Source: Bugula neritina
Taxonomy: Eukaryota > Animalia > Bryozoa
NCBI GenBank assembly: GCA_964035545.1
Contig: CAXIUT010000057.1
Coordinates: 175,896-208,984, forward strand
Length of the DNA: 33,089 nucleotides
Reading direction: 5' to 3'
The notes under the pieces were generated by a model. It worked only from the letters and a program-made list of their open reading frames with translations, made no database searches and was not told where the DNA came from. Made by a program: the position numbers and the translations under genes. Shown one piece after another: positions 1-16,391 of the stretch. The stretch's first letter is position 1; every line of letters begins with the position of its first letter.

Positions 1-96
1 CCCAACCCCAACCCCAACCCCAACCCCAACCCCAACCCCAACCCCAACCCCAACCCCCAACCCCAACCCCAACCCCAACCCCAACCCCAACCCCAA
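1..96. repeat. Telomere, (CCCCAA)n = C4A2/G4T2 repeats; chromosome end
   Basis: About 16 tandem CCCCAA units from base 1, with one CCCCCAA variant near 54-60. This is the repeat known from oligohymenophorean ciliates such as Tetrahymena. Confidence 0.98.
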
Positions 97-241
97 ACCA
101 AACCTGAATCAAATTGAATCAAATGCTAAAATATTTTATTAAATTTCTATTTCAATATTAAATAATTAATAATTGATTATTTCATTATCCTAATTAAAAT
201 AACACTATTCTAAGATTCTATTGAATATTAATTATAGAAAG

Positions 242-3597
<3,356 letters not shown>

Positions 3598-4057: not shown

Positions 4058-5157
4058 ATGTTAGATAAAAAACTTGTCTTATCATCAGCTATAATCATCA
4101 TAGCTATTGGATCTGTAGTGAAGATACAAAATCATCAAGAAGATAGCTGTTATTGCACGACTTCTGATCCACCTTTTTAATTTTCTACTTGTACTTCCGA
4201 GGATGATAGTTCTACTTGTATCACTGGACCTGGAACTTTCTGTTATTAAGTGTTGGATAAAATAGGATCTGATTGTTCAGTAATTTTTGATCCGTTTTAT
4301 CTAAACAATGGCATTATTGGGAATTGTAAACAATATATTTCAGAAGAAAATGATGCGGAAGTAATTTATTGCTGTGGTAAGAAATGTTCTTCTCCATAAC
4401 CTCTTCCAGCTGAAGATAACTGTTTCTGCCCTATGAAGATTCAACTAACAGTGTTGATGTTTGGACTTGCTAAGATGTCAATGGAATGCCAAAATACTGC
4501 AAAAATGGTCCTGGAAGTCAGTGCAGAACTACTCTAGAAGCTAGTACTGACTCTCGTGAAGATGTTTGTTCTAACTTGGGAAGTAGTGACAGCTGTTATA
4601 GCTAGAATGGTGTTCTTTGTTGTCCTAAAGACTGTTCCTAATCTCCTCCACCACCTCTTCCAACTCCAGATGAAGACTAGAACTGTTTCTGTTCCTTTGA
4701 GAGTGGATAGAATGAGTTGGACATCTGGACTTGTGAGTCTGATGATGGTAGTGAACCAATGAACTGTGTCAAAGACTCAGACTCAGACTGTTGGAGTGAC
4801 TTGCCTTCCTTCTTGGGAATGTCTTATGAAGCTACTTGTGAAAATATGGCCATTGATTCAAGTTGTAGAAACCTGGATGGAAGTGTTTTGTGTTGTCCTA
4901 AGCCTTGTTCTGAGACTCCACCTCCTCCAATGCAAGATTGTGAGTAAAAGTTGAGTGAGAAAAGAGACTGTGCTAATAAACCCAATCCTTCTAACTGTCT
5001 TTCAAGAGTGGCTATCAGATGTGCTGTATTAGATGCAAGGAGGACTTGTCGAGAGGAAAGGAATGTGAAAAGGAATTGCAAAGGAAGATCAAACAAATCA
5101 GCAAGAAGGCGTTGCAGAAGGAATGTTCGAGAGTTTTGCAAGAACAAGTTCAACTGA
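4058..5157 (+). CDS. Secreted Cys-rich modular protein, family copy 1; carries a 1-nt deletion at ~4432 (assembly error or pseudogene)
   Basis: Signal peptide MLDKKLVLSSAIIIIAIG, three 10-Cys domains and a basic tail. Reads tgccctatgaa where the other four copies read tgcccttatgaa. Span is 1100 nt, not a multiple of 3. Confidence 0.85.
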
Positions 5158-5338
5158 TTCTGATCAATCAATCCAATCAATATCGACATTCTAACTCAAA
5201 CCATCTCAATCTTTTTTATAAAATTAATATAATTTGATTTTGGTTAAAAACCATCTAGTTTTTAGATAATTCAAAAAAAGGTTTATCTTCAATCACAGAT
5301 ATATTACATTATTTACATATTAGTTTTTTTAGTGAAGA

Positions 5339-6457
5339 ATGAAAGCAGTAAAACTCCTTTTGGTTACTTTACTCTTGACCGTGGTGGCTGGCTAGATTCT
5401 TAAATCCAACTACCATCATCAGCCTGAACCTGACTGCTTCTGTCATTAGCTATTTCCCGCTTTGGATTTGTTAACTTGCTAGTCAGTTGATGCTGCTGGT
5501 GATGGAGTAAACTGTCAAAATGGAGCTGGCAGTTTGTGTCATGACTCAGTTCAATCACTTATAGATTCTGAATCTTTTACTTTTGATTTTTATTGTCAAA
5601 CATCTGGGAGGAAAATAAACTAATTAGGTTTACCAAAATGTACATTATTCATAATTGGATAGCCATAATATTGTTGCTTTGAACATTGTTCTACACCACC
5701 TCTTGCAGCTGAAGATAACTGTTTCTGCCCTTATGAAGACTCAGCTAACAGTTTTGATGTTTGGACTTGCTAAGATGTCAATGGAATGCCAAAATACTGC
5801 AAAAATGGTCCTGGAACTCAATGCAGAACTACTCTAGAAGCTAGCACTGACTCTCGTGAAGATGTTTGTTCTAACTTGGGAAGTAGTGACAGTTGCTATA
5901 GCTAGAGTGGTGTTCTTTGTTGTCCTAAAGACTGTTCCTAATCTCCTCCGCCACCTCTTCCAACTCCAGATGAAGACTAGAACTGTTTCTGTTCCTTTGA
6001 GAGTGGATAGAATGAGTTGGACATCTGGACTTGTGAGTCTGATGATGGTAGTGAACCAATGAACTGTGTCAAAGACTCAGACTCAGACTGTTGGAGTGAC
6101 TTGCCTTCCTTCTTGGGAATGTCTTATGAAGCTACTTGTGAAAATATGGCAATGGACTCAAGTTGTAGAAACCTGGATAGTAGTGTCTTATGTTGTCCAA
6201 AGCCTTGTTCTGAGACTCCACCTCCTCCAATGCAAGATTGTGAGTAAAAGTTGAACGAGAAAAGAGACTGTGCTAATAAACCCAATCCTTCTAACTGTCT
6301 TTCAAGAGTGGCTATCAGATGTGCTGTATTAGATGCAAGAAGAGCTTGTAGAGAGGAAAGGAATGTGAAAAAAAATTGCAAAGGAAGATCAAACAAATCA
6401 GCAAGAAGGCGTTGCAGAAGGAATGTTCGAGAGTTTTGCAAGAACAAGTTCAACTGA
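5339..6457 (+). CDS. Secreted Cys-rich modular protein, family copy 2 (372 aa, intact)
   Basis: MKAVKLLLVTLLLTVVAG signal peptide; open frame (TAR=Glu) to TGA; ends ...REFCKNKFN. Confidence 0.92.
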
Positions 6458-6849
6458 TTCTGATCAATCAATCAATCAATCAATCAATATAGACATTTTA
6501 ATTTTAATACTTATTGATTATCTAACAGTTTGTATACCTAAATTCGATTCATCATTTATTTAAGATAAAAACAATTCAAAGAAATATACAAAAAGATCAA
6601 ATAAAAATACTTTGAATAGAAGAGATTATCAAGATAAGTAAAAATAAAAAAAACTATAGTTTAGATTAATATCTTCAAGTTATTTTAAGATCTTCAAAAA
6701 CAGTAGGAACTTGCTTGAATCAATTCTTTATTTAAAATATTTAAAAGCTTTCTCTTTCACTTTATCTTTATTATTTTTACCTTTTTCAATTAACTTGTTT
6801 CTTAATTTTAAAGAAAACAATAGATAGAAGAGTATTCAATCAGAATGTT

Positions 6850-7637
6850 TTCTTTAAATATACTGAAAATGAAGTGACAATTTGTAGTCTTTGTTCTGAG
6901 ATGAAGAATATTCTACTCTTTCCTTATTCTTCAGCTTTTCGCTAAACACTGAATAATATCTTTTGTACTATATTAATGAATACAAGATAAAGTATCAATG
7001 ATATTTGCCCTTTTCTTCATTAAAGTTCTTGAAATAATTATATTGATATGAGATTTATAAATCATACTTCCCAAAATATCTCTTAACTCTAAGTTTTCTT
7101 TATTGAAATATTTTGTAAATATTTTTCAACAATTATTTTAAAACAACATTAAAACAATATCATTAGTATTAACTAAGATTAAGATCATTAAAAAAATCAA
7201 TTTATTAGTTTTATAAATTTTCAGATAAATTTTCTTCATCTTGAACTAATATTAAAGCTATCAATTATCCTCTTATCATTAGTTGTATTATTAAAAATAG
7301 AACTTATCAATTGAAATATTTGCACCTTGTAGAAGAACTCTTACCGCAATAAAAACTTGATTTTGTGGAAAGTCCAAAGCTTCTTTCTTCCTTCCTGCAT
7401 ATCCTCAAAGATCGACAATGTTCTTGTTGATGACTTTTACTCCATCATGATCTCCACATAAAAAATAAAAAAGATAAATTAACCTAAAAAACACTTTTTA
7501 AAGCTTTGGAGATAACCCTAAGAAATTCTAATAAGATTTTTGTTAAGAATATTTCTATCAAAATTTTACCTGTAAGTTTTTGTGATATTAATTGATAAAA
7601 CTCAAAATAGTCCAATAATTTTAATATAAGTTTAGAG
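6850..7637. repeat. Diverged upstream spacer of the duplication unit, homologous to ~9050-9831 and (inverted) ~15265-15850
   Basis: Shared blocks such as tttattagttttata, attaaagct, tcattagtt and ccatcatgat occur in the same order upstream of copies 3, 4 and 5. Confidence 0.75.
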
Positions 7638-8750
7638 ATGCTAAGCATAAAACTTACTTTGTTCATGATCCTTATAGCTATGGCTATGGCTTAGGTGGTA
7701 AAAGTAAACTACCATTAGCCAGTAGATGGCTGTTCTTGTCCTAACTAGTAACCCTCCTTTGATTATCAACTTTGTCAAGGATTTGATGAAGTAGGAAACG
7801 GGATAGATTGTGAGCCAAGTGGACCTAATACTCACTGTACTCAGTATATTTACAATACCGGTCTCTGTTTCAGATTTTTTCTTGATGAATAATGTCATAG
7901 AGCAGAAACAATAGTAAATGAACAGGGATAAACTATATTCTTGGGGTACTGTTGTACTGAAGCATGTGTGAGCCCTCCTCCACCACCTCTACCAGCTGAA
8001 GATAACTGTTTCTGCCCTTATGAAGATTCAGCTAACAGTGTTGATGTTTGGACTTGCTAAGATGTCAATGGAGTGCCAAAATACTGCAAAAATGGTCCTG
8101 GAAGTCAGTGCAGAACTACTCTAGAAGCTAGCACTGACTCTCGCGAAGATGTTTGTTTTAATTTGGGAAGGATTGATAGCTGCTATAGCTAGAGTGGTGT
8201 TCTTTGTTGTCCTAAAGACTGTTCCTAATCTCCTCCTCCACCTCTTCCAACTCCAGATGAAGACTAGAACTGTTTCTGTTCCTTTGAGAGTGGATAGAAT
8301 GAGTTGGACATCTGGACTTGTGAGTCTGATGATGGTAGTGAACCAATGAACTGTGTCAAAGATTCAGACTCAGATTGTTGGAGTGACTTGCCTTCCTTCT
8401 TGGGAATGTCTTATGAAGCTACTTGTGAAAATATGGCTATGGATTCTAACTGCAAAAGTCTTAACCTGGATGGAAGTGTTTTATGTTGTCCTAAGCCTTG
8501 TTCTGAGACTCCACCTCCTCCAATGCAAGATTGTGAGTAAAAGTTGAGTGAGAAAAGAGACTGTGCTAACAAACCCAATCCTTCTGACTGTCTTTCAAGA
8601 GTGGCTATCAGATGTGCTGTATTAGATGCAAGAAGAGCTTGTCGAGAGGAAAGGAAGGAGAAAAGGAATTGCAAAGGAAGATCAAGCAGACAAGCAAGAA
8701 GACGTTGCAGAAGGAACGTCAGAGAATTTTGTAAGAACAAGTTCAACTGA
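7638..8750 (+). CDS. Secreted Cys-rich modular protein, family copy 3 (370 aa, intact)
   Basis: MLSIKLTLFMILIAMAMA signal peptide; open frame to TGA; same domain layout. Confidence 0.92.
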
Positions 8751-9831
8751 TCCTGATCAATAAATCTAATCCATATTGAAATTTCTATATTAACTATTTA
8801 TCCTTAATATAATAAGCTTGTTTCCTCTAAGTCAGATAAGTTATAAGAGTAGATGTCTGAAACTTAAAGAAAGAAAAACTCAAAAAAATACCAAGATAAA
8901 TCAGTTAAAAATCCTGTCAAGATTAAGAGATTTTCAAAATAGTGAAAAGAAGAAGGCTAAAACTCATCAATTAAATGTCTTCAATCTTTAAAAACTATAT
9001 TTATCTCAGAATTTTATGATTTTTTTTCTCAATTGTAAAAAAAGAATTTGATTAGAAGTGTTTAATCACAATTTTTTCTTGAAATATCTTGAAAAATATT
9101 CTATAGTTTTCAGTCTTTGTTCCGAAATGATGTATATTCTGCCATTTTCATTTTCTTCAGCTTATAGCTAACATTGATCTCTTTTTATCTTATTATTGAT
9201 ACAATTTTAAGTTAAAATAATATTTAATATTTGATTAATATAAATCATTAGGTTTATCTTTCAATGCTTTAATAGTATTTACTCGGGATACCTCTTAACT
9301 GTAAGTTTCTTGTTTCGAAAATATTTAAAATAAATTCTGAATAATTTAAATATAAACTACATAAAAACACTTTTATCTTCATAAATTAAGATGAATAGCA
9401 TCACAAAGGTCAATTTATTAGTTTTATAAAATTTTCGATAAAAATTTCTTTTTGAACTAAAATTAAAGCTGTTATTTATTTACCCTTTTCTCATTAGTTG
9501 CATTATTCAAAGATGAAAAGTACGAACAGTAATATTTCTTTTTGATATGAAATCCTTATCAAAACGATAACCTAATTTTTAGATACTCCTAAGCTTCTTT
9601 ATCCTTTCATGCCTCGTCTCAACTCCTAATAGTGTTCTCATAGATGGTCAGAAAACCATCATGATGTCCGCGGAAAAAAATAAAATATTCCGATTCATGA
9701 GAAGAATTCTAGAAGCCTTGATAAAGTTTAAGATCATCTGATTTATTCTTCCACTTTTACCATAAAGTTTGTTGCGATATAAATTGATAAACTAAAAAGA
9801 AGAATTCAATAATTTTATTTTAAGTTCAGAG

Positions 9832-10953
9832 ATGTCAAACATAAAGTTTGCTTTGTTCTTGGTCCTCATAGCTATAGCTGCAGGCTAGATAGTGAAAATA
9901 AACTACCATCAGTTAGGAACAAACTGTTGGTGTCCTGATTTGGCTCCACGATTGACTTCGTGGACTTGCCCTCAAACCGCTCTAGTAGGTGTGATTAATC
10001 GACCAGCTGATACATCCCAATGTACCACTGGACCTGGTACAGCATGCTAAACGCTCTTTAACACTCTAAATGGACAGGGAGGAGCAGGTTTTGCTTGTCA
10101 AATTTTGGAATACGACTATTCAGAAAATGAATGTCGATAAAGTAGCTCTGGTTCAACCTAATATTGCTGTCCCTTCGCTTGTCCACCACCTCTTCCAGCT
10201 GAAGATAACTGTTTCTGCCCTTATGAAGATTCAACAGATAGTGTTGATATTTGGACTTGCTAAGATGTCAATGGAGTGCCAAAATACTGCAAAAATGGTC
10301 CTGGAAGTCAGTGCAGAACTACTCTAGAAGCTAGCACTGACTCTCGCGAAGATGTTTGTTTTAATTTGGGAAGGATTGATAGCTGCTATAGCTAGAGTGG
10401 TGTTCTTTGTTGTCCTAAAGACTGTTCCTAATCTCCTCCTCCACCTCTTCCAACTCCAGATGAAGACTAGAACTGTTTCTGTTCCTTTGAGAGTGGATAG
10501 AATGAGTTGGACATCTGGACTTGTGAGTCTGATGATGGTAGTGAACCAATAAACTGTGTCAAAGACTCTGACTCAGACTGTTGGAGTGACTTACCTTCCT
10601 TCTTGGGAATGTCTTATGAAGCTACTTGTGAAAATATGGCTATGGATTCTAACTGCAAAAGTCTTAACCAAGATGGAAGTGTTTTGTGTTGTCCTAAGCC
10701 TTGTTCTGAGACTCCACCTCCTCCAATGCAAGATTGTGAGTAAAAGCTGAGTAAGAAAAGAGATTGTGCTAACAGACCCAATCCTCAGTTCTGTCTTTCA
10801 AGAGTAGCGATCAGATGTGCGAGATTAGACGCAAGGAGAATTTGCAGAAAACAAAAGAGAGAGAAAAGGAATTGCAAAGGAAAGCCAAGTAGATATGCAA
10901 GAAGGCGCTGCAGATGGAATGTTCGACGATAATGCAGGAGAAAATTCAGATGA
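9832..10953 (+). CDS. Secreted Cys-rich modular protein, family copy 4 (373 aa, intact)
   Basis: MSNIKFALFLVLIAIAAG signal peptide; open frame to TGA; ends ...RRECRRKFR. Confidence 0.92.
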
Positions 10954-11593
10954 TCCAATCAATTTATCCAATACATATTAAGATTTTGATCACAATCATT
11001 TTCTAACAAACTTGTATTTCCTCAGTTCGATATTTTTTTTGAAGAATAAATCAATGGTTTTAAAGAATAAAAATAAATTTCTAAGCTTAAAGAACAAAAA
11101 TTCAAATAAAGGCCGAAAAAAACAAATCAAAAAAAATTAAACTGAGAAGAAGAAATGATCAAGAAGTACTAAAAGAATAAATCTAATATTCAAGTTGAAA
11201 TTATTGAAGCACTTATAATACCCATAACAATAGCAGTTATAAAATTGATTAAATCCTTTAAATCAGTTATTTATTTCAAGATAGTGAGTAATTTCTTTCT
11301 CAATTACTTTTATCTTTTTGGTTCTTTGAGTTCATATCTAGAATATAATATTAGAACTTAGAAATATATTTTGTCTTCATCAAATAAAATCAATCGCTTT
11401 TAAAAATATATATAAAGACTGATAAAACTTTTTGAATTAATGTTTGTCGAATAAGATAAATAGTAAAAGGACTATGATGAAATCCAATCAAGATAAAAAG
11501 CTGATTTTTTTCTTAAATTTGAAATAAATATCTATCTTTATAATCATCTATTTCAATACCAATTAATATTCATTGATTTATCCATAATTAAAT

Positions 11594-11906
11594 ATGGAGA
11601 AGGACTATCACAAATCAAAGAAATATACCAAGTACTTCACCCTTACTAAGCGATGAACTAACCAACCTTGATATTCCATATAAATTTCGGGACTTTTGCC
11701 AATAAGACTATGCAGATTACATTTCTTGCGTGAGGACTCATCCAAGAGTATTTGAAAATTTATTTTTCTATTCGATTCCTTTCAGTGAAGGACTGTCGAG
11801 TTGTAAAGTGTTTAGACGGAAGTGGCAGAAATGCTAAGAATATCGAGAGAAGGAATTGTTCGAATAGATGAAGAAGATATACGATTTGCAAAGAGATTTA
11901 GTCTGA
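11594..11906 (+). CDS. NDUFB7: NADH:ubiquinone oxidoreductase subunit B18 (NDUFB7)-like, 97 aa; 19-nt intron at 11632-11650
   Basis: LDIPYKFRDFCQEDYADYISCVR...SSCKVFRRKWQKCEEYRE is a twin CX9C with the RDxC signature. Intron gtacttcacccttactaag joins the ATG exon in frame. Confidence 0.75.
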
Positions 11907-12190
11907 TAGAAGTTCCTTGATATTGATTAGTTTGATAAACTGATTTAAAACTTGTTTACTAAAATATATATTGAGTCAATACTCATTTTTTAAGTTTTAA
12001 AATGTTGACTACTATTCAGATAGAATCGCTATTTATATACTAAAGTATCATCCTAAAGCTAAAATTACGATTGAATAAATATTCCATATAATTAATTTTA
12101 TAAAATTGATTAAACTACCTATATATGTACATATTTATTATTCTTTTAGTTATATTTTGATAATTATACAATCAAGTATAAAGTACAAAA

Positions 12191-13827
12191 ATGCAGGAAA
12201 ACCTCTAAGGAGTCAGAATTAAATCCTATAACTTTCTAAGAGTACTAGGCAAAGGACAATTCGCAACCGTCTATGAAGCCTACAACGAACAAAACAACAC
12301 CACTGTGGCAGTCAAAGCTATATCCATGGCTCAGTTCAAACAACCCATCATCAAAGAACTAACACAATCAGAGGTCAAAATAATGAAGCTACTCAGAGAC
12401 AACCCTAACATCATCAAATTTATCGATAACTTCAAAACTGATAATTCCGTCCTCATAGTTATGGAATATTGCGAACAAGGAACTCTTGAATAGTACACGA
12501 AAAAACATGGAAGACTAACATAGGACAAAGCTACACATTTTCTCAAACAAATTATCAACGGATTCAAAGGGCTGCACTAGAAAAATGTTATCCATCGAGA
12601 CTTTAAATCAGCAAATGTACTTCTGAAAGGAGGAGTAGCCAAGATAGCTGACCTAGGATTTGCTAAAATGCTATCAAATAGTCTATAAATGGCACATACA
12701 CAACTAGGAACATCACTAACTATGGCTCCTTAAGTTCATGAAGGGAGTCCATATGGTCTAAAGGCAGATATATGGTCGCTAGGAGTGGTATACTACCAGT
12801 TGATCTACAATAGATATCCTTATTTGGGAAGAGATGATAACTAAATTTATAAAATGATGAAGTACCCTCCTAATTTTTCTGGAATTAATATCAGTGCAAA
12901 GTCTAAAGATTTTATTTCTCGATGTTTGACTTTTAACCCAGACAAAAGAATCTCATGGGCTGAGGTTTATAGACACAGATTAATTACAGAAGAAGAAAAA
13001 GCTAAATATGGAGTGATGACAGGTGTGGACATGTCAAAAAATATGTCTTTTTACGACAAATATAAAGAAAAAGATATTTCTAAAGAAAAATTATTTAATA
13101 TCAGTGAAACAGAACTCGAACTCCAGCAATAACAACAGTTAAAGGAAATATAACTCTAGAAATTCAAGTTTTTCAACTAAAAGAAAAAGAAGAATACAGC
13201 TTTATTAGAAAAATACAAGCTAATTTATCTTAACTTCAGAAACAATCATGTATTTCCTTTCAAGTATATTTTGCCTCACGTAAATACCATCCTCTCTATC
13301 AAGGCGAACCATCCTTTATATTTGTACATTATATGTAAAAAATCATACCATGACATTCTTGTCTTTTATGATCTTCTAAAGGAAAAGCCAATTTTTTGAA
13401 TCTTGAGCCAGGTTTTTAAGAATTTTCAGAGAGTCAAGTCTATAAAGAACTAAAACAGATGGTTGAATAAGATGTCTGTGTAGTTAAGTTTCAAACTATT
13501 TAGTATTTAAAATCTGTTAAGGAAGTTGATGGAGAGTCAAAAAAAGAACTAGAGTTAGATACTATAAATAACAAGCAATGGGATAAATATGTCAAATCGA
13601 TGATATAGAACTATGAATACATTTTAATGTAAAACCTCGATGTGCTGAAAGATGAATTTCAAGAGAAATTGATTCTGGTGATTGAAGCTTTGAACTATCT
13701 GAAGAATAATTAAGAAGACAAAAAGTTCGAGGTATTCGACAAAAGATTATCAGAACTAAACTTCAAGCATGCAATCGAAATAATAAATGCAAAACTAGCT
13801 TATGTTTGGAATAAATACCAGCAGTGA
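12191..13827 (+). CDS. Ser/Thr protein kinase (ULK/ATG1-like ciliate family); apparent -1 frameshift near 13355-13397 in the C-terminal extension
   Basis: GKGQFATVY, VAVK, HRDFKSANVLL, DLG, MAP(TAA=E), ADIWSLG. The kinase frame hits TGA at 13397, but a protein-like frame continues to TGA at 13825-13827. Confidence 0.88.
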
Positions 13828-14136
13828 TTGTGATTAAGTAACTTTTGATAAAAATATTATTAACTATATTTTATGATTAATTTAAATTTATGATTTGTTC
13901 GAGGATTTACTCTATATCATTCGGGTGAGTATTTCATTTCTTTGAACTAAAATGGATATCTAGGCATAAAGTCATGATTACTGTTTGAATAGCTCTAATA
14001 GATAATAAATTTTTAAAATCATTCAAAAAAACACAAAAAAGTAACAATCTAAAAGTATAGATCAAATTATTACTGAGATAATTTAAATATTGATTCTTGT
14101 AATAATTTAAAAATATATTTGTTTTATTGATCAAGA

Positions 14137-15264
14137 TCATCTGAATTTTCTCCTGCATTATCTTCGAATATTCCATCTACATCGCCTTCTTGCAAATCTG
14201 GTTGATTTTCCTTTGCAATTCCTTTTCTCTCTCTTCTGTATTCTGCAAATTCTCCTTGCATCTAATACTGCACATCTGATGGCTACTCTTGAAAGACATT
14301 TTTGAGGATTAGGTTTGTTAGCACAGTCTCTTTTCTCACTAAGCTTTTACTCACAATCTTGCATTGGAGGAGGTGGAGTCTCAGAACAAGGTTTTGGACA
14401 ACACAAAACACTTCCATCTTGGTTAAGGCTTTTGCAGTTAGAATCCATTGCCATATTTTCACAAGTAGCTTCATAAGACATTCCCAAGAAGGAAGGCAAG
14501 TCACTCCAACAGTCTGAGTTAGAGTCTTTGACACAGTTCATTGGTTCACTACCATCATCAGACTCACAAGTCCAGATATCTAACTCATTCTATCCACTCT
14601 CAAAGGAACAGAAACAGTTCTAGTCTTCATCTGGAGTTGGAAGAGGTGGAGGAGGAGATTAGGAACAGTCTTTAGGACAACAAAGAACACCACCTTAGCT
14701 ATAGCAGCTGTCACTACTTCCCAAGTTAGAACAAACATCATCACGAGAGTCAGTGCTAGCTTCTAGAGTAGTTCTGCATTGACTTCCAGGACCATTTTTG
14801 CAGTATTTTGGCACTCCATTGACATCTTAGCAAGTCCAAACATCAACACTATATGTTGAATCTTCATAAGGGCAGAAACAGTTATCCTAAGCTGGAAGAG
14901 GTGGCGGTGATGGTGGGCAATCGAAGGGACAGCAGAAGTCGCCAAATTAATTATTACCATTAGTAACAAGCTGACATTTATTTTAATTATATTGTCAATT
15001 AATAACAGAACAAACATCGAATCTTCCATCGAGCAAAATAAAGGTTTCATAGCAATATGTACCAACTCCAAAAGTACATTGAGATGCATCTGGTGGACTA
15101 TTACCCTCCCTGAGAACTGAAACAGAGCAAGTCCCCCAATTCAATTGAGGAGATAGTTCAGGGCACAAACAGTTTGTTCCTACTTTATGGTAGTTTATTT
15201 TCACTATTTAACCTACAGCCATAGCTATGAGGACCAAGAACAATGCAAGTTTTACGTTTGACAT
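14137..15264 (-). CDS. Secreted Cys-rich modular protein, family copy 5 (inverted); in-frame TGA at 14995-14997 (possible pseudogene)
   Basis: MSNVKLALFLVLIAMAVG signal peptide; 1128 nt with no frameshift; all Cys retained; one internal TGA in the variable domain. Confidence 0.85.
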
Positions 15265-16391
15265 CTCTAAACTTAAAATAAAATTATTGAATTGTTTTGA
15301 GTCAGATCAATTAATATCACAAAAACGTACTGGTAAAATAAAAAGTAAACTCAGATAATATCAAAACAGTATCAGAGCTTCTGTAATCCTTCAAGAGAGC
15401 GAAATAAAGTGTTTTTTAACTCAATAAATCATTTTTATTTTTTTCCGCGGAGATCATGATGGATTTCAGATCATCAATGAGGACATTGTTGTAGCTGGGG
15501 ATAAACAGGAACGGACAAAGAAGCTGTAGAGTCTCTAAAGATCAATTTTTCATGTTTGTAAGGATCTTCTATAAGAGGCAAATATTACTACAGTTCGTAT
15601 GTTGCACTTTTAATAATGTAACTAATGATAAGAGGATAATCAACAGCTTTAATTTTGATTCAAGAACAAAATATTATCAAAAAAATTATAAAACTAATAA
15701 ATCGACCTTCATGATGCTATTTATATCAATTCGGTGACTAAATTGTTTTATGTTGTTCAGATTAAAATTATGATATTAATTATTACAATAATATTTTTCA
15801 AAAAAACTTAGATTTAAGAGAAATATTATTCTTAAGTAAGAATTTTAACCATAGTAACCATCATAGCTTAAATAATTTCAAGGAAATAAACATTGGATAT
15901 TGAAATAGCTTTATACTTCACTCATTAATTAGATAAAAAAATATCATTCAATAGCTTAACTATAAATCAGGCTAAATATTAAAGATAAAAGGAATAATAG
16001 TCAACCGAGTTGATAAACCTTGGAAGAGACCTGAAAAAGAGTTAGTTCTGATAGTTTTAATAATATTGAAGTTTCTATCTGTATGTCCAAGTGCTCCATT
16101 GATTTGATACAATTTTTTTTTGATAAGAATAATAGTACTTTGTAGTTGTAAAAGGCTCAAGCAGTATCGAAAATAAACTTAGAAATTTAACTAAAATACT
16201 TGTTCTTTCCCACTCAGAATAGTTCTTTTAAGCTTCAATATTTGTTTTCATATTTTTTATTGAAGATATGACGAATAGATTATGATTTTAAGACTAATTT
16301 AGATAAATATCATGAAAATATAAAAAGAATAAACAAGTTAATAGTATCATGTCGAATCATCTATCATATTAAATTTGAAAATAATACAATA

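Follow-up and report, generated by a model that had tools for sequence, protein, structure and literature searches.

Probable interlocus gene conversion in the constant block of five telomere-proximal paralogs from a peritrich-type ciliate

We describe a cluster of five related genes (c1 to c5, the last inverted) in a 33,089-bp window of the assembly GCA_964035545.1 (contig CAXIUT010000057.1, positions 175,896 to 208,984), deposited under the bryozoan Bugula neritina and in this window of ciliate origin. The last ~790 nt of each gene belong to an island of high identity set between diverged flanks; synonymous divergence falls within this island, the trees that relate the five copies change along it, and c3 and c4 share an identical tract of 301 nt inside it. 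In our judgment, these mosaics very probably arose by ectopic homologous repair (interlocus gene conversion) between neighbouring paralogs, as a form of concerted evolution.

Each copy comprises a signal peptide, a diverged ten-cysteine module (V), two constant ten-cysteine modules (C1 and C2) and a basic, cysteine-containing tail, with proline linkers joining the modules. The copies are laid out as follows (coordinates throughout are those of the window), with merely 181 nt between the first two:

c1, 4058-5157, + strand; constant block 4394-5174; 1-nt deletion at ~4432
c2, 5339-6457, + strand; intact, 372 codons; constant block 5693-6481
c3, 7638-8750, + strand; intact, chimeric; constant block 7980-8767
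c4, 9832-10953, + strand; intact; constant block 10183-10969
c5, 14137-15264, - strand; inverted; constant block 14120-14907; one in-frame TGA in V (codon 90)

Modules C1 and C2 are ~40% identical to each other, and since V retains the count of ten cysteines and gives a weak match to the C1/C2 profile, the protein can be described as three copies of one module followed by the tail (75 residues, basic, eight cysteines, without a hydrophobic end). Such a product may be a secreted, disulfide-rich, modular protein whose N-terminal module would carry specificity and whose basic tail would bind an anionic partner or matrix.

An identity island between diverged flanks

The constant block extends from the proline linker between V and C1 to ~25-45 nt beyond the stop codon, some 790 nt in total (alignment columns 781-1575), and across its 780 ungapped sites the copies differ pairwise by 3.9-12% (88-96% identity). 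Likeness is lost on either side: identity drops downstream to background (40-60%) from ~45 nt past the stop, and the upstream divergence K is 0.36-0.52 among c3, c4 and c5 and 0.6-0.85 to c1. Synonymous divergence (dS) between copies ranges over 0.06-0.21 in C1, 0.11-0.27 in C2, 0.12-0.71 in the tail and 0.73-2.2 in V (the last being rough values, given uncertain V alignments), that of the constant modules lying about ten-fold below that of V; the difference between core and rest is significant (Fisher p 3e-6 to 4e-11). The ratio of non-synonymous to synonymous divergence (dN/dS) in C1/C2 is 0.04-0.28. An earlier, sequence-only reading of this DNA had confined the exchange to the 3' ~750 nt and had called the signal peptide, V and flanks far more diverged; both descriptions hold, the island measuring ~790 nt and lying between saturated flanks.

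The centre of the block (columns 986-1240) is near-uniform in all five copies, with three to nine differences per pair per 255 nt, and the tail is uniform solely within {c1, c2, c3} and within {c4, c5}. Overlapping tracts with variable ends would produce such a uniform centre together with a group-wise tail.

Discordant groupings and the c3/c4 tract

The sequence-only reading proposed that the groupings of the copies change along the gene, on the strength of six diagnostic motifs. We located all six in the copies to which they had been assigned, and the 6-nt indel carried by the C2 diagnostic is real. The C1 and C2 motifs are placed as follows:

CSNLGSSDSC (C1): c1 4567-4596 (+); c2 5867-5896 (+); c5 14704-14733 (-)
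CFNLGRIDSC (C1): c3 8154-8183 (+); c4 10357-10386 (+)
DSSCRNLD (C2): c1 4855-4878; c2 6155-6178
DSNCKSLN (C2): c3 8442-8465; c4 10645-10668; c5 14422-14445 (-)

In the tail, NVREFCKNKFN ends c1, c2 and c3, and RRECRRKFR (with TAA read as Glu) ends c4 and c5. The constant block holds 58 informative sites, 27 of which follow the split 45|123 and 12 the split 12|345; seven follow 34|125 (six of them inside 34 nt), four 23|145, two 25|134 and one 13|245, the other five being three-state sites. The C2 (12|345) and tail (45|123) splits are mutually compatible, fit the tree ((1,2),3,(4,5)) and match the physical gene order; the C1 motif split (34|125) is incompatible with that of the tail. It is thus correct, as had been claimed, that no single tree fits all three diagnostics, with the refinement that the conflict comes from the C1 motif alone. 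Because CFNLGRIDSC lies inside the tract that c3 and c4 share, one event between these two copies explains it.

Tests across the whole block confirm significant discordance. The pairwise homoplasy index (PHI) gave p<=1e-4 at window sizes of 5 and of 10 informative sites, and p=4e-4 at a size of 15. The best single tree requires 160 parsimony steps against a minimum of 145 (15 extra), so no one tree explains all informative sites; a single breakpoint at columns 1260-1269 lowers the count to 155, with (1,2)|(3,4) to its left and (1,2)|(4,5) to its right, and site-order permutations of the segmentation returned p<0.001 for one to four breakpoints. Maximum-likelihood (ML) trees switch grouping across columns 1268/1269: the pair (c3,c4) receives 97% bootstrap support over columns 841-1268 (approximately unbiased (AU) test of the (4,5) tree, p=0.054), and (c4,c5) receives 100% over columns 1269-1575, where the (3,4) tree is rejected (AU p=0.0003).

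The best-supported conversion tract is the following:

301-nt identical tract: c3 8047-8347 (+) = c4 10250-10550 (+); contains CFNLGRIDSC

Over this same stretch c4 and c5 show 12 differences, and c3 and c1 show 11; a GENECONV-like permutation for the c3-c4 pair gave p=0.0002 (0.002 when corrected for ten pairs; this and the other recombination tests are home-made). The tract is bounded 5' at column 848, inside the constant block. Gene c3 is c4-like over 8047-8467 and c1/c2-like from 8468 to ~45 nt past its stop; its partner c4 is c3-like over 10250-10670 and c5-like from 10671. Triplet counts describe the same switch from both sides: sites where c3 matches c1 rather than c4 stand at 3:20 in columns 848-1268 and at 42:8 in columns 1269-1575 (Fisher p=8e-9), and, in the mirror comparison, those where c4 matches c3 rather than c5 stand at 15:4 and then at 13:35 (p=2e-4). 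The null came from 2000 data sets simulated along the single ML tree, each region having its own rate; in these the c3-c4 identical run was at most 259 nt, the 34|125 sites numbered at most five and the triplet p never fell below 5e-5; the observed run, site count and triplet switch were reached in 0 of the 2000. The variant shared by c3 and c4 comprises five synonymous and five non-synonymous changes, which argues against parallel selection as its origin.

Conversion and competing explanations

The five genes most likely stem from old tandem duplication of a gene for a secreted protein, with one copy in inverted orientation, and non-reciprocal repair has probably since copied stretches of a few hundred nt between neighbours again and again, presumably in the germline nucleus. 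Copying would have been confined to C1, C2, the tail and the first ~25-45 nt of the 3' untranslated region (UTR); the centre of the block, if most often covered, would become near-uniform in all five copies, and the tail would be homogenised within its two groups. Heteroduplex would be limited to the region that still offers long identical stretches, with V, the signal peptide and the flanks too diverged to pair, so that tracts would stop at the V/C1 linker. Selection has probably kept the V modules different, uniform ones probably being selected against. The island is bounded on both sides by diverged DNA, and from this we infer non-reciprocal conversion over unequal crossing-over, in which a flank is carried along; any direction of copying is likewise provisional.

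The inverted copy is likely, from its sequence, to have taken part. The C1+C2 core of c5 has a dS of 0.14-0.24 to the other copies. Against c4, core dS is 0.137, with 0.37 in the tail, 0.28 in the signal peptide and an upstream K of 0.36 (core versus tail, p=0.02; core versus signal peptide plus V, p=3e-6); against c1, core dS is ~0.19 and the flanks reach K 0.6-0.85. The core of c5 is hence younger than its surroundings, which makes exchange involving this copy likely. The sequence-only reading had gone further and asserted conversion into the inverted copy from the motifs; the young core speaks indirectly for exchange with c5, in whichever direction, but the C1 motif needs no c5 event, and none of the c5-specific tracts is individually significant in the GENECONV-like or triplet tests.

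Its suggestion that V domains are shuffled onto scaffolds is unsupported. No extra copies of the C block, the tail or the tested V pieces occur beyond the five genes in the 216-Mb assembly, and for the most part V has diverged in step with the signal peptide and the upstream flank; with only five copies in the assembly, there is neither a cassette archive nor an outside donor. What stands of the earlier interpretation is segmental exchange restricted to the 3' block, the claims on V shuffling and on the inverted copy having exceeded the data.

Unequal crossing-over, with birth and death of chimeras, would make c3 a fusion whose 5' part is c4-like and whose 3' part is c2-like. Such exchange is common in tandem arrays, c3 does switch parent near column 1269, and c2 and c3 are ~70% identical 360-540 nt downstream of the stop. 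A crossover would, however, bring the whole downstream flank with it, and the likeness of c3 to c1/c2 ends ~45 nt after the stop; moreover, the c3/c4 tract is closed at its 5' end as well (column 848), and no simple unequal crossover can account for exchange with an inverted copy. We regard this history as improbable, and conversion as the better account of an island closed at both ends.

An assembly artefact, in which near-identical repeats, alleles or heterogeneous macronuclear copies were merged, might produce false mosaics and could perhaps account for the frameshift of c1 and the stop of c5 as well. The contig comes from a contaminant ciliate in an animal assembly and was scaffolded with 200-N gaps, and in c1 the frame is shifted by one nucleotide of length in a short run, both of which suit this explanation. 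The copies nonetheless differ by 4-12% and have unique flanks within ~1 kb, a situation that long reads normally resolve; the boundaries are coherent, with hundreds of nt per tract and the same breakpoint reached from c3 and from c4, and neither an alternative haplotig nor a collapsed copy is present in the assembly. An artefact accordingly seems to us just as improbable as a crossover.

Two of the five copies are broken. Gene c1 lacks one base at ~4432 relative to the other copies, a frameshift that falls 38 nt inside the constant block, and the in-frame TGA of c5 stands at ~14995-14997. Relaxed constraint was not seen in the private changes of either copy (five synonymous to two non-synonymous in c1, 13 to 11 in c5); with no excess of replacements among them, we take the breaks to be recent events or else errors of sequencing. 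A tiny intron that would remove the c5 TGA is unsupported, the sole GT..AG candidate being 36 nt long and such that its removal would delete a cysteine.

A more elaborate scheme would cast the family as an adhesion or recognition protein of a sessile ciliate, with V kept diverse by selection, the scaffold kept uniform by conversion that reaches the inverted copy, and the broken c1 and c5 retained as donors, giving rise to new combinations of V and scaffold, possibly in the somatic nucleus during clonal growth. We hold this scheme to be improbable as well.

Least probable of all is descent along the single tree ((c1,c2),c3,(c4,c5)) without exchange, with purifying selection and codon bias preserving the block and with homoplasy or clustered multi-nucleotide mutations behind the conflicts: this tree fits 39 of the 58 informative sites and the gene order, codon bias is stronger and dN/dS low in C1/C2, and the scattered 23|145, 25|134 and 13|245 sites could be homoplasy, but the six clustered 34|125 sites, synonymous and non-synonymous alike, would need two hits each, the 301 nt over which c3 and c4 are identical contain 12 differences between c4 and c5, the presumed sisters, the simulations with regional rates never gave the run, site count or triplet switch, and ~45 nt of non-coding 3' UTR are conserved too beside saturated flanks.

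Several points weigh against conversion itself. On the left segment the AU rejection of the (4,5) tree is marginal, and the ML segments were picked after the data were seen. The analysis draws on one genome and one haplotype, in which a chimeric assembly of near-identical repeats could have arisen, and it compares paralogs within one species. A GC-biased signature is absent (GC content at four-fold sites: C1/C2 0.09-0.12, V 0.20, neighbouring genes 0.26-0.33). The stronger codon bias in C1/C2 could itself lower dS somewhat, but it cannot explain the discordant trees or the identical c3/c4 tract.

The ciliate contig, its relatives and known systems

The window is one whole contig within scaffold C66 of the assembly, with 200-N gaps on either side. 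It opens with a telomere, and the cluster lies 4-15 kb from it; the far end of the contig is without one.

1-94, strand not assigned: (CCCCAA)n telomere, 12 matches to the telomeric 18-mer, 0 in shuffles
2-3238: P-type Ca-ATPase, Pfam matches on pieces
12191-13399: protein kinase, supported by Pfam

Several telomere-capped ciliate contigs, separated by 200-N gaps, have been joined in the scaffold, which thus does not correspond to a single chromosome.

Under the bacterial or standard code the window contains almost no open reading frames (ORFs), and with TAA/TAG as sense codons long genes appear. Reassigned codons (written x) fall within TGxS, PxGLP, VAKxA and ATxPP of the ATPase and within APx of the kinase, positions that we take to be the invariant Glu of TGES, PEGLP and ATEPP in P-type Ca-ATPases and of APE in kinases. 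Reading TAA/TAG as Gln, the common ciliate usage (code 6, which opened the genes), is ruled out by the conserved motifs, which show Glu. TGA is the only stop and closes all five paralogs. Since TAA/TAG stand at invariant Glu and every gene ends in TGA, the window uses the peritrich-type nuclear code (TAA/TAG = Glu) and is a telomere-capped contig of a peritrich-type ciliate. This code is known from Sanchez-Silva 2003, on the citation given in PMC4967479.

Around the paralogs, a small ORF at 7236-7448 (-) lies upstream of c3 and points away from it in transcription, and related sequence occurs upstream of c4 (~9261-9503, -) and of c5 (15456-15737, +). These units are ~70% identical to one another, with a common peptide (…INSFNF.S…YKTNK.TF.MLFI…); the small ORF was duplicated along with c3, c4 and c5, and the old duplication unit is larger than the gene. 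The frame upstream of c4 is interrupted, which may reflect tiny introns. A (CAAT)n microsatellite opens the 3' UTRs (5158-5185, 6458-6492), that of c2 being seven bases longer than in the other four copies (an alignment gap). If TGA is taken as the sole stop, long antisense frames lie open over the constant blocks (4521-5195, 5821-6471 and 8108-8980, all -), which are probably a by-product of code and composition and not genes.

Family searches used stop-free pieces (TAA/TAG read as stops). With these pieces, Pfam returned nothing but noise at E<=1, with no match to PF01508, the cysteine repeat of Paramecium surface antigens, and a word search gave no relatives; ESM Atlas scores reached at most 0.78, with no relative, and metagenome scans by exact DNA 41-mer and by protein alignment gave no matches. 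Among protein representatives, a search yielded a single true relative, P0001, a 70-amino-acid ORF fragment from a 642-bp contig of an ENA assembly that is 59% identical to C2; a second match there was repetitive and false. P0001 is presumably from a related ciliate, its gene call cut by TAA/TAG. At the C2 indel it carries the long form, and Lys follows Cys, as in c3, c4 and c5; this makes the short form in c1 and c2 the probable derived state, once more in agreement with the backbone tree. An AlphaFold model of the C2 piece was too poor to use (mean predicted local distance difference test score, pLDDT, 53.5).

The cluster offers a compact, statistically clean case of partial concerted evolution, a single gene combining a scaffold that is homogenised with an N-terminal module that runs free, and its source is a ciliate lineage for which hardly any genomic description exists. 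In ciliates, it could help to establish how long such tracts are and what threshold of identity ectopic repair requires, and to ask in which nucleus, germline or somatic, that repair takes place.

Textbook cases of interlocus conversion are the primate gamma-globin genes, human RHD/RHCE and the arms of Y-chromosome palindromes. The present cluster resembles them in its identity island within old, diverged flanks, its lowered synonymous divergence, its mosaic tracts of a few hundred nt and its shifting trees, and also in that neighbours exchange most and inverted copies can take part. It departs from them in having a ciliate host with germline and somatic nuclei, in that the island covers the constant two-thirds of a modular secreted protein, and in showing no GC bias.

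The nearest ciliate parallel is the subtelomeric surface-antigen (SAg) family of Paramecium tetraurelia, whose intrachromosomal duplicates and pseudogenes have been proposed as a source of variation through gene conversion (PMC4235209). Both concern cysteine-periodic secreted or surface proteins encoded near telomeres by intrachromosomal duplicates in a ciliate. The proteins described here are, in contrast, ~370 residues long rather than thousands, have a hydrophilic, basic C-terminus that is not of the anchor type and carry their variable part at the N-terminus, and conversion here homogenises rather than diversifies; membership in the SAg family is not supported.

Segmental conversion also serves antigenic variation, in the variant surface glycoproteins (VSG) of Trypanosoma brucei as summarised in PMC4235209 and in the ves genes of Babesia bovis (PMC7485966). 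Our genes share with these the segmental, mosaic transfer between members, and two of the five copies are broken, which recalls pseudogene donors. In the VSG and ves systems, large silent archives supply the variable segments that are copied, within a clone, into an expression site. Our cluster instead leaves its variable domain out of the exchange, and the assembly has five copies and no archive.

The variant-specific surface proteins (VSPs) of Giardia are cysteine-rich; their N-terminal part varies, and their C-terminal part is conserved and ends in a short basic tail. That layout is close to ours: a cysteine-rich secreted or surface protein, variable at the N-terminus and conserved at the C-terminus, with a basic tail. 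The two differ in that our proteins have no transmembrane segment, no CXXC periodicity and no detected sequence similarity to VSPs, and the organism is unrelated; a cysteine-rich variable antigen of Giardia is treated in PMC2188815. Set beside these systems, the cluster reveals no new mechanism: it is a case of classical concerted evolution by a known one, and what is new is the family on which it acts, one without named relatives.

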